This document shows, one piece after another, positions 55,415 to 58,714 of a stretch of 64,000 nucleotides of DNA. The notes under the pieces are model-generated. The model saw only the letters and a list, made by a program, of their open reading frames with translations, was not told the DNA's origin and searched no databases. Both the position numbers and the translations under genes were made by a program. The DNA is taken from sequence record MF459647.1. The stretch is one strand, 5' to 3'. Within the stretch, counting starts at the first letter, position 1. The number at the start of each line of letters is the position of its first letter.

Positions 55415-58400
55415 TTAAGCAACACGACGACGGAGTTGCAGAATACGACGGTTACGAGTCAGACGGGCTTCCTCAATAACGGTGTCGATAGTCAGCAGTT
55501 TCTTCGTCTCAATTGGCAGCATCTGACTGAGTCGACGTATCTGTGCTTCAATACGCAACGCCAGGATGTTGTCATTGGTGTTCATCAGTTCATCAGACAG
55601 TTTAGTGATTTGCTCACGAATCTGATTAATCTGCCCTTCCACAACTGGATCGTTAGCTGCACTGTTCTCAGCCTGATGGTTATTAAGCAGGTTACGGGAA
55701 TCCACTAAGCTAATGCCCATTGGAATGCCGTACAGTGGTTTACTCTGCCCACGCTTAATGAACCAGTAGGTCAGCAACCAAGCAACCACCAAGTCATCGT
55801 GACGGTTGTTGTCGTGGTCAATACGCCCACCTTTCACCTTCAGGTTAATGAGTTCATCACACAGCTTGTCGTAATTCAATCCAAAGCCGGTCATCCCCAC
55901 TGCTTCCTGGATATACCCGTAGAACTCCTCACGTGATTTGGCGTTGGTGTTAAACCCGAAGTGCTGCTTCAACCGCAGATAGAAATCTTTCGTACGGTAT
56001 TGTGCACCTACTCGTTTCACCTCCTGGAACTCTTTATCGAATTTCTCCGGATACTGATAAATCTGGTTAAAGATTTTCTTAAACGGATCCAATCCTTTTG
56101 CCGGAAGCGTAATCAACAGGTTATCAATCATGTGGTGCGCGTAGTTGCGTTCAATGATTAACAGGCTGTTAGGGATACACACCAGGATGTCCACGATAAT
56201 GGTCGCTACGTCGTCCAGGTACGCCAGAGGGTAACGACCTACCCCTATGACCTTGCCGCTGCGTAGAGAGCGTATGATGAGCGTACAGGCATCCTTGTTG
56301 ATAGCTGACGAGGTATCACAACCCACCAAGAAGTAATCGTTGTGTTCAGGCTTACAAATCTGCTGGAATTCTTCTTGTGAAATGAAGAAGTCAATGAACA
56401 GTCCTGAATCACGATACTCTTTGCTCCAGACCGTGTTGCGTTTTGCATTGTTAATCGCTTCACGCGTCAAGTCATCGAACAGGCGGTTCTCACCGTCTTC
56501 GGTCCACATCAACAACAAGTCAATCTTCGCCTTACTGAGCGAGAGGTTAAGCTTGTCGATGGTCTCTTTCACCCAACCTTTGTCTTTACCCAGTTGCAGG
56601 TAGTTGTACACCATGCTAACTGACGGCGACGTGGTGTCTTTCGGGCTGGCTTTAATGAGACGGTAGGCGAGATGACTTTCACTGTAGGAGTCAAAGAACT
56701 TCTCACGCCATTCGGTTGCACCCATGAGTTTGTCAAACATGAACTCACCGGACGGGTGCTGAACCGTGTTCGGCGTTGTGATGTAGTTGATGCAGTACGG
56801 CAACCCTGCAGCTCGCATGTTTTCCATCTCGGTCAATGCCGATGGCATACAGCCGTTGATGATGGCCTCAATGAAGGAGATGTATGACCCTTCATCGACG
56901 GTGGTCGAGCCTACGGTTAAACCACGACCCAAGTTCTCTGCGGCATCCTGCCCCTGTTGAGGAACGCTGATGGTCATGACGTTGGTGTCAGCCTCACCGA
57001 AGGAGCGGTAGGTCAAATAGGTACCCGCATCTTTATCGCGGTAGGTTGGGTTAACCAAGTACTTTGGAATACAGGTACGGATACGTTTAATCGCATCAAT
57101 AAACTGGGCCCGGTTATCGGACTTCAGGGTAATGACGTGACTCTTGTACCCGCGACCTACAATATAAGTAAGCCAAAAGTTGATAACCTGTACAGATACA
57201 GTATTGTGAGTAGGGATAAACTCATCAGTAATGTAAATCTGTTCCTCATTATCAACCTCGATGCATGACGCCTCGTCCGTGCCATGATAATCGATAGCTG
57301 TGAGGTAAAGTGCGTTATCAACATCAGGGAGATGAGGAACAGCACGGCGTTTAAAATAGTTAAGCTCATGAGGTAACGTGACCTTTAAGTATTTCTTATC
57401 TACCGCGGCCGTACCCCCTAAACTCCGGAACAGGTATTGTAGCGCATAACTGTAAACCGGGTCGGGAATCGGGCAGTAGATATGATGGTTGTCGACTTTC
57501 CCACGGCAGTCCATTACACCCTGAATCAAACTGAGTTTGTTGTCGATACTGTCTTCCAGGTAATCCAACGGAAGCGTTCTCGGTTTCTCATCAAACGGCT
57601 TGCCTTCAGCGTGAGCGATAACCCAAGTATGGGGTTTCACCTGTGTAAAGGTAAAGAACGCAGGAAGTTGCGTTTGGATTTCAGCAATGACGTCTTCAGG
57701 CAGCTTGGTGTAATACAGCTTACCGTTGAGACGGGTACCGGTTAACATCACCCCTTGAATGTACGGCGGGATAACGTGGGTTTTACTCGGCTGCTCTTCC
57801 GGTGTCGCTAACGGCATGCGAATAGGACGTTTATGGTAGTGCTTGTCTTTCAGCTTGTCGATTAACATCGCGGTGGTGTAATCCACTTCGAGTCCATCGT
57901 TAGCCCCACGTTCCTTATCGAATACTGTCCACAGGTGTTCGGCACCGCTGTGGGTTTCACGACCGTCGCTGAAGGTCATTTTGTAGATACGTTTACGACC
58001 CTGAGGATGTACCCCAATGACCGTTGAGACATTTCCGGTACGGTCAATGATTTGGTCACCGGTCCGGATATCACCGATACGCTTCCAACGTGTCCCGACG
58101 GTAGACGGTGTCCCAGCGGGATTCATGACACGCACTTTACTGTTGTTCGGCTGAAGCTTACCCTGCTGACGGGGCATGATCATGTACGTCGTGATGTGGT
58201 TCAGGTAGTTCCACATAAAGCTGACGTTACCGCGGTTCGCCTTGAACTTCATGTCCGGACGTAACCGACAAATCTCACGCAAGAAATACCAGAAGTTATT
58301 CTTGCACTCGTTCATGATCATCACCTTCTGGTCTTCCGTCAGGTTTTCATCATACGGGTCCACGCCAATTAACAGGGGGTTATTCAACTGCAGGATAAAC

Positions 58401-58714
58401 CCGTAGTTCTTTATTCCCTGCAGACGAAACAGTTCAGCGGTACGCAAGAAGCTTTCGTTGGTGGTTTGCAAATCGGGCTTGGCCCGATAACGGTAAAAAT
58501 CTTTTAGGAATCTTACAGTCTTGATACTGAACAAACTGTCTTCGTTAAAATGTGCTAACAGATTTTCATCGTCAGTGCGGTCAACATAATTTAACGGACG
58601 TTTTTCATCTTTGTTGATGTGGAACTTGGTACTGGAGTCATCCATCAGGTACTTGGGAAGTTCAGGAATGCCCAGAAACTGCTGGATACTTTTAGCGACT
58701 TGTAAATCGTCCAT
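55415..58714 (-). CDS. terL: Terminase large subunit precursor containing an intein
   Basis: Walker A PRQQGK|T is restored after removing the intein; Walker B TTVDE, ITTPN, nuclease motifs VGCDTS, IIERN and HDDLVVA. Confidence 0.92.
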   Translation of the reverse strand: MDDLQVAKSIQQFLGIPELPKYLMDDSSTKFHINKDEKRPLNYVDRTDDENLLAHFNEDSLFSIKTVRFLKDFYRYRAKPDLQTTNESFLRTAELFRLQGIKNYGFILQLNNPLLIGVDPYDENLTEDQKVMIMNECKNNFWYFLREICRLRPDMKFKANRGNVSFMWNYLNHITTYMIMPRQQGKLQPNNSKVRVMNPAGTPSTVGTRWKRIGDIRTGDQIIDRTGNVSTVIGVHPQGRKRIYKMTFSDGRETHSGAEHLWTVFDKERGANDGLEVDYTTAMLIDKLKDKHYHKRPIRMPLATPEEQPSKTHVIPPYIQGVMLTGTRLNGKLYYTKLPEDVIAEIQTQLPAFFTFTQVKPHTWVIAHAEGKPFDEKPRTLPLDYLEDSIDNKLSLIQGVMDCRGKVDNHHIYCPIPDPVYSYALQYLFRSLGGTAAVDKKYLKVTLPHELNYFKRRAVPHLPDVDNALYLTAIDYHGTDEASCIEVDNEEQIYITDEFIPTHNTVSVQVINFWLTYIVGRGYKSHVITLKSDNRAQFIDAIKRIRTCIPKYLVNPTYRDKDAGTYLTYRSFGEADTNVMTISVPQQGQDAAENLGRGLTVGSTTVDEGSYISFIEAIINGCMPSALTEMENMRAAGLPYCINYITTPNTVQHPSGEFMFDKLMGATEWREKFFDSYSESHLAYRLIKASPKDTTSPSVSMVYNYLQLGKDKGWVKETIDKLNLSLSKAKIDLLLMWTEDGENRLFDDLTREAINNAKRNTVWSKEYRDSGLFIDFFISQEEFQQICKPEHNDYFLVGCDTSSAINKDACTLIIRSLRSGKVIGVGRYPLAYLDDVATIIVDILVCIPNSLLIIERNYAHHMIDNLLITLPAKGLDPFKKIFNQIYQYPEKFDKEFQEVKRVGAQYRTKDFYLRLKQHFGFNTNAKSREEFYGYIQEAVGMTGFGLNYDKLCDELINLKVKGGRIDHDNNRHDDLVVAWLLTYWFIKRGQSKPLYGIPMGISLVDSRNLLNNHQAENSAANDPVVEGQINQIREQITKLSDELMNTNDNILALRIEAQIRRLSQMLPIETKKLLTIDTVIEEARLTRNRRILQLRRRVA
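57203..58156 (-). mobile_element. Class 3-type intein (318 aa) with degenerate LAGLIDADG domain
   Basis: Begins LQPNNSKV directly after GK; EHLW (block B), SCIEVD (block F), PTHN|T (block G and +1 Thr). Confidence 0.9.

Follow-up and report, generated by a model that had tools for sequence, protein, structure and literature searches.

How does a phage obtain a working terminase when the gene for its large subunit carries 318 additional codons in the middle of the ATP-binding loop? This question is raised by the terminase large subunit (TerL) gene of sequence record MF459647.1, of which a stretch of 64,000 nucleotides (the window) was analyzed. The TerL precursor gene lies on the minus strand at positions 55415 to 58714 and forms one open reading frame (ORF) of 1099 amino acids (aa) with the insert and 781 aa after its removal. 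Over this interval, the sequence matches Erwinia phage vB_EamM_Joad at 100% identity and its sister phage RisingSun at 97%; both are 235-kb jumbo myoviruses and distant relatives of phiKZ (PMC6034870). Our answer, to which we assign a probability of about 0.88 on the basis of sequence and modeled structure, is that the insert (57203 to 58156, minus strand) is a functional class 3 intein that occupies the classic P-loop site (GK/T) of Joad TerL.

The insert is free of stop codons. It begins with LQPNNSKV, continues through EHLW and SCIEVD, and ends with PTHN, and it is flanked by PRQQGK on one side and TVSVQV on the other. It sits in frame between the Lys and the Thr of the Walker A motif, such that excision yields PRQQGKTV. 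We compared it with 107 clear terminase homologues obtained from a search of about 5.8 billion proteins. The PRQ.GK segment is kept in every aligned homologue (107/107), and an insert of 156 to 359 aa is found at the identical point in 99 of them. The other eight (P0092, P0100, P0101, and P0103 to P0107; 707 to 787 aa) are intein free and proceed from PRQ.GK directly into T/S-V. Because these eight proteins are colinear with Joad TerL across GK/T, the intein boundaries, L1 to N318, are exact to the residue. An earlier note, made by reading this DNA, had placed a 318-aa insert in the TerL Walker A motif and had proposed surveying relatives for intein-free terL alleles; its translation proved exact, and the 8 of 107 are alleles of the kind sought.

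Several independent comparisons bear on what the insert is. In phmmer searches of PDB sequences, its matches included gp41-1 (E = 1.8e-08) and, at E = 3e-06 to 1e-04, class 3 DnaB inteins from M. smegmatis and M. chimaera; the M. smegmatis intein Msm DnaBi1 (6bs8) gave E = 3e-06. In alignments to solved inteins, EHLW coincides with the HxW of block B, SCIEVD with the Cys of block F, and PTHN with the THN at the C terminus. Pfam returned nothing significant for either the whole Joad protein or the insert alone (best match, Hom_end_hint, E = 0.18), so recognition of the intein needed PHROGs, PDB sequences, homologues, and the fold. Among the homologues, the Pfam matches were Hom_end_hint, Intein_splicing, Hint, and LAGLIDADG_3. 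An AlphaFold2 model of the insert, built from the alignment of 99 sequences and extended by six residues of extein at either end, had a predicted local distance difference test score (pLDDT) of 94.9 and a predicted template modeling score (pTM) of 0.93. In this model, the insert consists of a Hint domain and a LAGLIDADG-type endonuclease domain. Foldseek matched the whole model to PI-SceI and TliVMA, two inteins that bear an endonuclease (E about 1e-11), and the match probability was 1.0 for PI-SceI, TliVMA, DnaB, GyrA, and other inteins. For the Hint lobe of the model, class 3 DnaB inteins were the top mini-intein match (TM-score by target, 0.77 to 0.80). Matches to solved inteins, the fold, and the intein-free homologues together confirm the insert as an intein that splits the Walker A motif and not a chance pattern.

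The protein that it interrupts is, by homology of both exteins and by the Walker A motif that becomes intact once the insert is removed, the terminase large subunit. The whole 1099-aa ORF matches the PHROGs terminase large subunit family phrog_2 with E = 1e-49. The N-extein (aa 1 to 186; 58157 to 58714, minus strand), which ends in PRQQGK, the first half of Walker A, reaches E = 8e-42 against phrog_2 when searched alone. The 595-aa C-extein (aa 505 to 1099 plus the stop codon; 55415 to 57202, minus strand), which starts with TVSVQV and aligns with the intein-free homologues, reaches E = 4e-08. The Joad record yielded a single terminase copy.

Other placements and other kinds of element were considered and rejected. 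An N-terminal boundary at Ser6, or 10 residues later as in the local alignment to 6bs8, does not hold, since the intein-free alleles set the junction at GK/T. In addition, LQPNNSKVRV fits block A, and the ~10 extra residues are a loop that shorter relatives lack. This loop (58097 to 58126; residues about 11 to 20, MNPAGTPSTV), a ~10-residue lengthening between the first two block A strands, is present in many members of the family and is modeled with high confidence. Removal at the RNA level is unlikely, and a group I intron or other RNA- or DNA-level removal was rejected: an Rfam scan of the region gave no RNA family match, there are no contig joints, and the ORF runs through without interruption. 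In close relatives, contigs assembled from one DNA library (groundwater) and two RNA libraries (food fermentations) span both junctions unbroken, although the RNA libraries may contain DNA, and contigs across the junctions show presence, not absence. Finally, some actinophage inteins have a separate endonuclease gene in another frame or on the opposite strand; the only ORFs that overlap the Joad intein in this way are short (70 to 87 aa).

Class 3 inteins are defined by a non-nucleophilic residue 1, a Trp/Cys/Thr (WCT) triplet, and Thr or Ser at position +1 (PMC2807308). As judged from its sequence, the Joad intein has every one of these features, in the form of Leu1, Trp at B12, Cys at F4, Thr at G5, a terminal His-Asn, and Thr+1. 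All of the following are encoded on the minus strand. The Hint N-lobe (intein residues 1 to 94; 57875 to 58156), delimited from the secondary structure of the model, holds block A, which is LQPNNSKVRV followed by the longer loop, and block B, GAEHLW, with His74 at B10 and Trp76 at B12. The Hint C-lobe (residues 280 to 318; 57203 to 57319) holds block F, SCIEVDNEEQIY, with Cys298 at F4, Asp302, and Tyr308, and block G, PTHN, with Thr316 at G5, His317, and Asn318. The codon of the non-nucleophilic Leu1 is CTT (58154 to 58156). That of Trp76, the W of the triplet, lies at 57929 to 57931, and this residue aligns with the corresponding Trp of Msm DnaBi1. Cys298 (TGC, 57263 to 57265) aligns with the catalytic Cys118 of Msm DnaBi1 and is the predicted first nucleophile. 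The predicted second nucleophile, Thr+1 (ACT, 57200 to 57202), is at once the first residue of the C-extein and the Walker A Thr.

Conservation follows the same residues. The 99 inteins, which are cluster representatives only 25 to 71% identical to the Joad intein, share an invariant G41, D64, R66, H74, W76, G247, C298, T316, H317, N318, and T+1, so that each ends in THN followed by Thr+1. Residue 1 behaves in the opposite way, with 11 different states (Leu, 23; Met, 21; Ala, 15; Phe, 11; Tyr, 8; Gly, 7; Pro, 5; Glu, 4; Asp, 2; Gln, 2; Cys, 1), and is a non-nucleophile in 98 of the 99. Such drift across the family would be expected of a position that is not involved in the splicing chemistry. 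The single Cys1 intein, P0099, also has the full WCT triplet and resembles a small number of WCT inteins with Ser1 or Cys1 that the class 3 paper mentions (PMC2807308). The triplet and the non-nucleophilic Leu1 had both been pointed out in the earlier note, and both stand, as does its statement that terminase P-loop inteins are known from other phages (PMC2807308 and PMC5050341); phage terminase large subunits and the P-loop insertion site are in fact already present in the paper that defined class 3 (PMC2807308). Its suggestion that Leu1 with Thr+1 is an unusual variant was mistaken: Leu is the commonest residue at a freely varying position, and Thr+1 is the norm of the class.

A P-loop ATPase could not bind ATP with an insert of 318 aa between the Lys and the Thr of its Walker A motif. 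Reasoning from P-loop ATPase biochemistry, DNA packaging must therefore depend on splicing. The single terminase copy and the lack of any amino acid change in the exteins between Joad and RisingSun (nonsynonymous divergence, dN = 0) further argue that the TerL gene is in use and so must be spliced. By analogy with other class 3 inteins, in which the block F Cys is an obligate nucleophile and two branched intermediates form in succession (PMC2807308 and PMC6195587), the 1099-aa precursor would be translated with 318 residues breaking the ATP-binding loop. Cys298, aided by His74, Trp76, and Thr316, would then attack the Lys(-1)-Leu1 bond to give a thioester branch, and the N-extein would be transferred to the side chain of Thr+1. 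Cyclization of Asn318 would release the 36-kDa intein, and an O-to-N shift would leave a 781-aa terminase in which Walker A is whole again (...PRQQGKTVSVQ...). Mycobacteriophage terminase inteins do splice (PMC5050341). For Joad, the tryptic peptide TVSVQVINFWLTYIVGR would be diagnostic, as it follows Asn in the precursor and its tryptic N terminus can arise only after splicing.

The history of the intein can be read from its distribution. In a tree built from exteins only, Joad belongs to a well-supported clade made up of 74 cluster representatives (the Joad/EL clade), and the intein is present in 74 of 74. It is likewise present in all members of an 18-member clade that includes named Aeromonas phage proteins. 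The five close intein-free alleles all belong to one small mixed clade, where they are neighbors of intein-bearing sequences. The intein tree recovers the extein clades, with the 74-member clade as one branch (support, 99), and intein and extein pairwise identities are correlated (Spearman, 0.85), with the intein evolving faster (mean identity, 37% versus 62% for the extein). These patterns indicate that inheritance has been mainly vertical and that the intein has been passed on with the terminase gene in the Joad/EL clade. The five intein-free alleles (P0092, P0100, P0101, P0103, and P0104) occur only in the clade of P0076, P0077, P0079, and P0081, a clade whose inteins mostly have canonical GDG/DTDG endonuclease motifs; the intein of Klebsiella phage Miami also retains the GDG and DTDG motifs. 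This fits ongoing gain and loss by homing in the mixed clade versus fixation in the Joad/EL clade. Related inteins, about 28 to 31% identical to that of Joad, are found in other genes of phiKZ-like phages, for example, in the SNF2-domain helicase gp233 of PhiPA3. Records of the EL group each have three to four matching places, and hence these genomes carry several such inteins; Joad has one.

The endonuclease-like domain (intein residues 95 to 279; 57320 to 57874, minus strand) was assigned by its fold, which has two motif helices and in Foldseek matches TliVMA, I-DmoI, WhiA, and the endonuclease domain of PI-SceI; both motifs can be aligned with canonical ones of relatives, and 15 homologues match Pfam LAGLIDADG_3. 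The two LAGLIDADG acids hold the catalytic metals, as Asp20 does in I-CreI. Both are lost in Joad, where motif 1 reads YIQGVMLTGT (at residue 132) and motif 2 reads LIQGVMDCRG (at residue 210), with Arg in place of the catalytic Asp in motif 2. The loss is shared throughout the Joad/EL clade: none of its 74 members has an acid at position 8 of either motif, and the lost motif 2 position is often Arg or Lys. Among 25 inteins of more distant clades, 14 keep canonical motifs (...LLGDG... and ...LMDTDG...). With both acids gone, the domain should be inactive as a nuclease and the intein should no longer home. We conclude from these sequences that the Joad-lineage intein is probably no longer a mobile homing element.

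Although predicted to be dead as a nuclease, the domain is under strong purifying selection. Between Joad and RisingSun, it has 23 synonymous and 2 nonsynonymous changes, for a ratio of nonsynonymous to synonymous divergence (dN/dS) of 0.021, similar to that of the Hint N-lobe (0.032). Environmental relatives have 18 listed differences inside the intein, 15 of them synonymous; of the 7 listed within the endonuclease-like domain, 5 are synonymous and 2 are nonsynonymous. Across the 74-member clade, pairs of sequences share on average 34% identity in this domain and 49% and 59% in the two Hint lobes. The simplest reading is that the fold is selected without nuclease activity, because an essential protein could not be spliced if its 185-residue insert misfolded. 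Natural short forms also occur: P0085 is a 156-aa mini-intein from which the whole endonuclease domain is gone, and P0015, P0045, P0055, and P0096 are missing the motif 1 region. The domain would thus be dispensable for splicing in these relatives. It is also worth recording that synonymous divergence (dS) between Joad and RisingSun is 0.21 in the intein (39 changes over 212 synonymous sites), 0.10 in the C-extein (36 over 392), and 0.17 in the N-extein, and that in two metatranscriptome assemblies the contigs split into paired allelic pieces only within about 57581 to 58181, inside the intein. The higher intein dS and the allelic contig breaks might be explained by tighter synonymous constraint in the exteins or by a history of recombination particular to the intein.

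Alternatively, the dead domain, or the intein as a whole, may have been co-opted, either to time or gate terminase activation in response to redox state, metal, or temperature or, after excision, to bind DNA. We regard this as improbable. The retention of the domain across the 74-member clade after loss of both catalytic acids speaks for it, as do the low dN/dS, the 5 synonymous changes among the 7 environmental differences, and the frequent Arg or Lys at the lost motif 2 position, and there is a precedent for conditional splicing in class 3 (PMC6195587). Purifying selection, however, is also expected if a misfolded insert simply blocks splicing, and the lineages with a shortened or deleted domain show that relatives can splice without it. 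In the precedent itself, Msm DnaBi1 forms a redox trap through Cys48, a residue of its Hint fold (PMC6195587). Cys298 is the only Cys in the Joad Hint lobes, which leaves no partner for the known disulfide, and a redox switch like that of Msm DnaBi1 was rejected on this ground; C217 and C228, in the endonuclease-like domain, are found only in the nearest relatives. Temperature-dependent splicing has been seen in mutants of the class 3 prototype and not as a natural switch (PMC2807308). Hence, of the earlier proposal that packaging depends on splicing and might be gated by redox or temperature, the dependence follows from the split P-loop, whereas gating by either signal is speculation by analogy. 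A function of the endonuclease-like domain itself is possible but unlikely. That the Joad/EL terminase harbors a permanently domesticated intein, with its dead LAGLIDADG domain selected for a task of its own, such as DNA binding by the precursor or the excised intein, or with splicing as a timer or switch to delay activation of the packaging motor, seems improbable to us.

For the splicing mechanism, some points tell against a working class 3 intein. We found no report of experimental splicing in the literature on the Joad protein or its orthologues, and we infer both splicing and the role of Cys298 as first nucleophile from sequence and fold. By sequence, the Hint N-lobe is nearest to gp41-1, a class 1 intein, and grafting WCT onto gp41-1 did not produce a working class 3 intein (PMC7664689), so the triplet alone is no guarantee of the mechanism. 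Position 7 of block B is Gly in Joad, versus Ser in the class 3 prototype MP-Be DnaB and Asp in Msm DnaBi1.

One could imagine a class 2-like route in which the N-terminal junction is attacked directly by Thr+1, with the block F Cys confined to a supporting or coordinating role. As in class 2, the N-terminal nucleophile is absent. We nevertheless consider this route very unlikely, as class 2 by definition lacks WCT, which covaries with loss of the N-terminal nucleophile (PMC2807308), the W, C, and T are invariant in all 99 homologues, and the Joad C-lobe aligns with that of class 3 Msm DnaBi1. That the insert does not splice at all, leaving the terminase either disabled or working with the insert in place, has nothing specific in its favor and is extremely improbable: Joad has been isolated and propagated (PMC6034870), its record has a single terminase locus, the ORF is intact with strictly conserved splicing residues and exteins, and by textbook knowledge of P-loops a Walker A motif holding a 318-aa insert cannot bind ATP. 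A working class 3 intein is the reading that we favor.

Comparison with described systems shows what the Joad intein shares with them and how it differs. The prototype, from the DnaB protein of mycobacteriophage Bethlehem (MP-Be DnaB; Tori et al. 2010, PMC2807308), also has a non-nucleophilic residue 1, which is Pro where Joad has Leu. In both, the Trp at B12 lies two residues after the block B His, the C terminus is THN, and the next residue is Thr+1. Cys320, Ile321, Asp324, and Phe330 of MP-Be DnaB have the same spacing as Cys298, the Ile at +1, the Asp at +4, and the Tyr at +10 in Joad. Both are full-size inteins with a LAGLIDADG domain in a phage host gene. They differ in that the prototype interrupts a helicase and Joad's a terminase, in the Ser versus Gly at block B position 7, and in that the prototype endonuclease appears functional (an I224S change was introduced there for splicing constructs), whereas Joad has neither catalytic acid.

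The DnaB inteins Msm DnaBi1 and MchDnaB1 (6bs8, 6rix, and 6riy) occupy the same P-loop site as the Joad intein, after an N-extein ending in ...GK; their WCT residues align with those of Joad, and they provide the best mini-intein structural match to its Hint lobe. Unlike the Joad intein, they are mini-inteins without an endonuclease domain, reside in DnaB on a bacterial chromosome, and have Ala1 and Ser+1, and Joad has no equivalent of the Cys48 that makes the redox trap in Msm DnaBi1. The mycobacteriophage TerL1-a and actinophage terminase inteins share the Lys-Thr Walker A position with Joad. This position has been called the "classic" P-loop intein site, and mycobacteriophage terminase inteins were shown to splice (Kelley et al. 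2016, PMC5050341). According to a recent survey, actinophages have 287 class 3 inteins, most of which lie in terminases and Cas4 exonucleases (Gosselin et al. 2025 preprint). In actinophage terminases, class 3 inteins with LAGLIDADG domains are common, but these terminases are of the Terminase_1 or _6 type, whereas Joad TerL is of the phiKZ/EL type with a 186-aa N-terminal extension. The actinophage inteins are sporadic, with active endonucleases, in contrast to the fixed intein of the Joad/EL clade with its predicted dead one.

Closer to Joad, the inteins of EL (gp11, YP_418044), FishSpeaker, Klebsiella phage Miami, Vibrio phage Aphrodite1, and Aeromonas phage LAh10 share its insertion site, WCT triplet, and THN/T junction. 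The EL intein is 36% identical to that of Joad. In place of the Joad Leu, residue 1 is Gln in EL, Met in FishSpeaker, Asn in Miami, Glu in Aphrodite1, and Asp in LAh10. The Miami intein, unlike that of Joad, has canonical GDG and DTDG motifs and may still be mobile. There is presumably an InBase registry entry, the "PhiEL ORF11" intein, which would be the EL gp11 orthologue. We found no literature on an intein in Joad, RisingSun, EL, or other phiKZ-like phages, with the 34-intein list of the class 3 paper unchecked for EL, and the paper describing Joad never mentions one (PMC6034870). The kind of element (described in 2009), the insertion site, and the sequence signature are thus all established, and the Joad intein itself is new or at least unannotated. 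What is new for the Joad/EL clade, across its 74 representatives, is an intein that is always present and matches the terminase tree, whose catalytic acids are lost, and whose endonuclease-like domain is still selected.

The naming of this gene in databases is inconsistent. RefSeq calls the RisingSun orthologue terminase large subunit, and the GenBank label for the Joad, RisingSun, and EL genes is "putative ATP-dependent DNA helicase." Several other orthologues are "DarB-like antirestriction" in RefSeq, and others are "hypothetical protein." The helicase label probably arose from the likeness of the intein to inteins in DnaB and SNF2 helicases. With tblastn, at least 80% of the precursor was covered in 55 phage records, from hosts that include Erwinia, Shewanella, Pseudomonas (the EL group), Klebsiella, Stenotrophomonas, Vibrio, Photobacterium, and Aeromonas. 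Near-identical relatives of the terminase (56700 to 58700, roughly 97 to 98% identity) are also present in metagenomes and metatranscriptomes from groundwater, roots, food fermentations, and bioreactors, indicating that Joad-like phages are not restricted to orchard samples.

Nothing here changes what is known of how inteins work. At the level of annotation, records labeled helicase or DarB-like can be corrected to terminase large subunit with an intein. The natural series of 11 first residues at one class 3 site could be of use to designers of splicing tools of this class. The 99 representatives, together with the intein-free alleles, make up a large alignable family for the study of intein evolution. 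Within that family, sporadic inteins with intact endonuclease motifs can be set against a fixed, catalytically dead, and still selected one, which offers material for testing the homing-cycle model.

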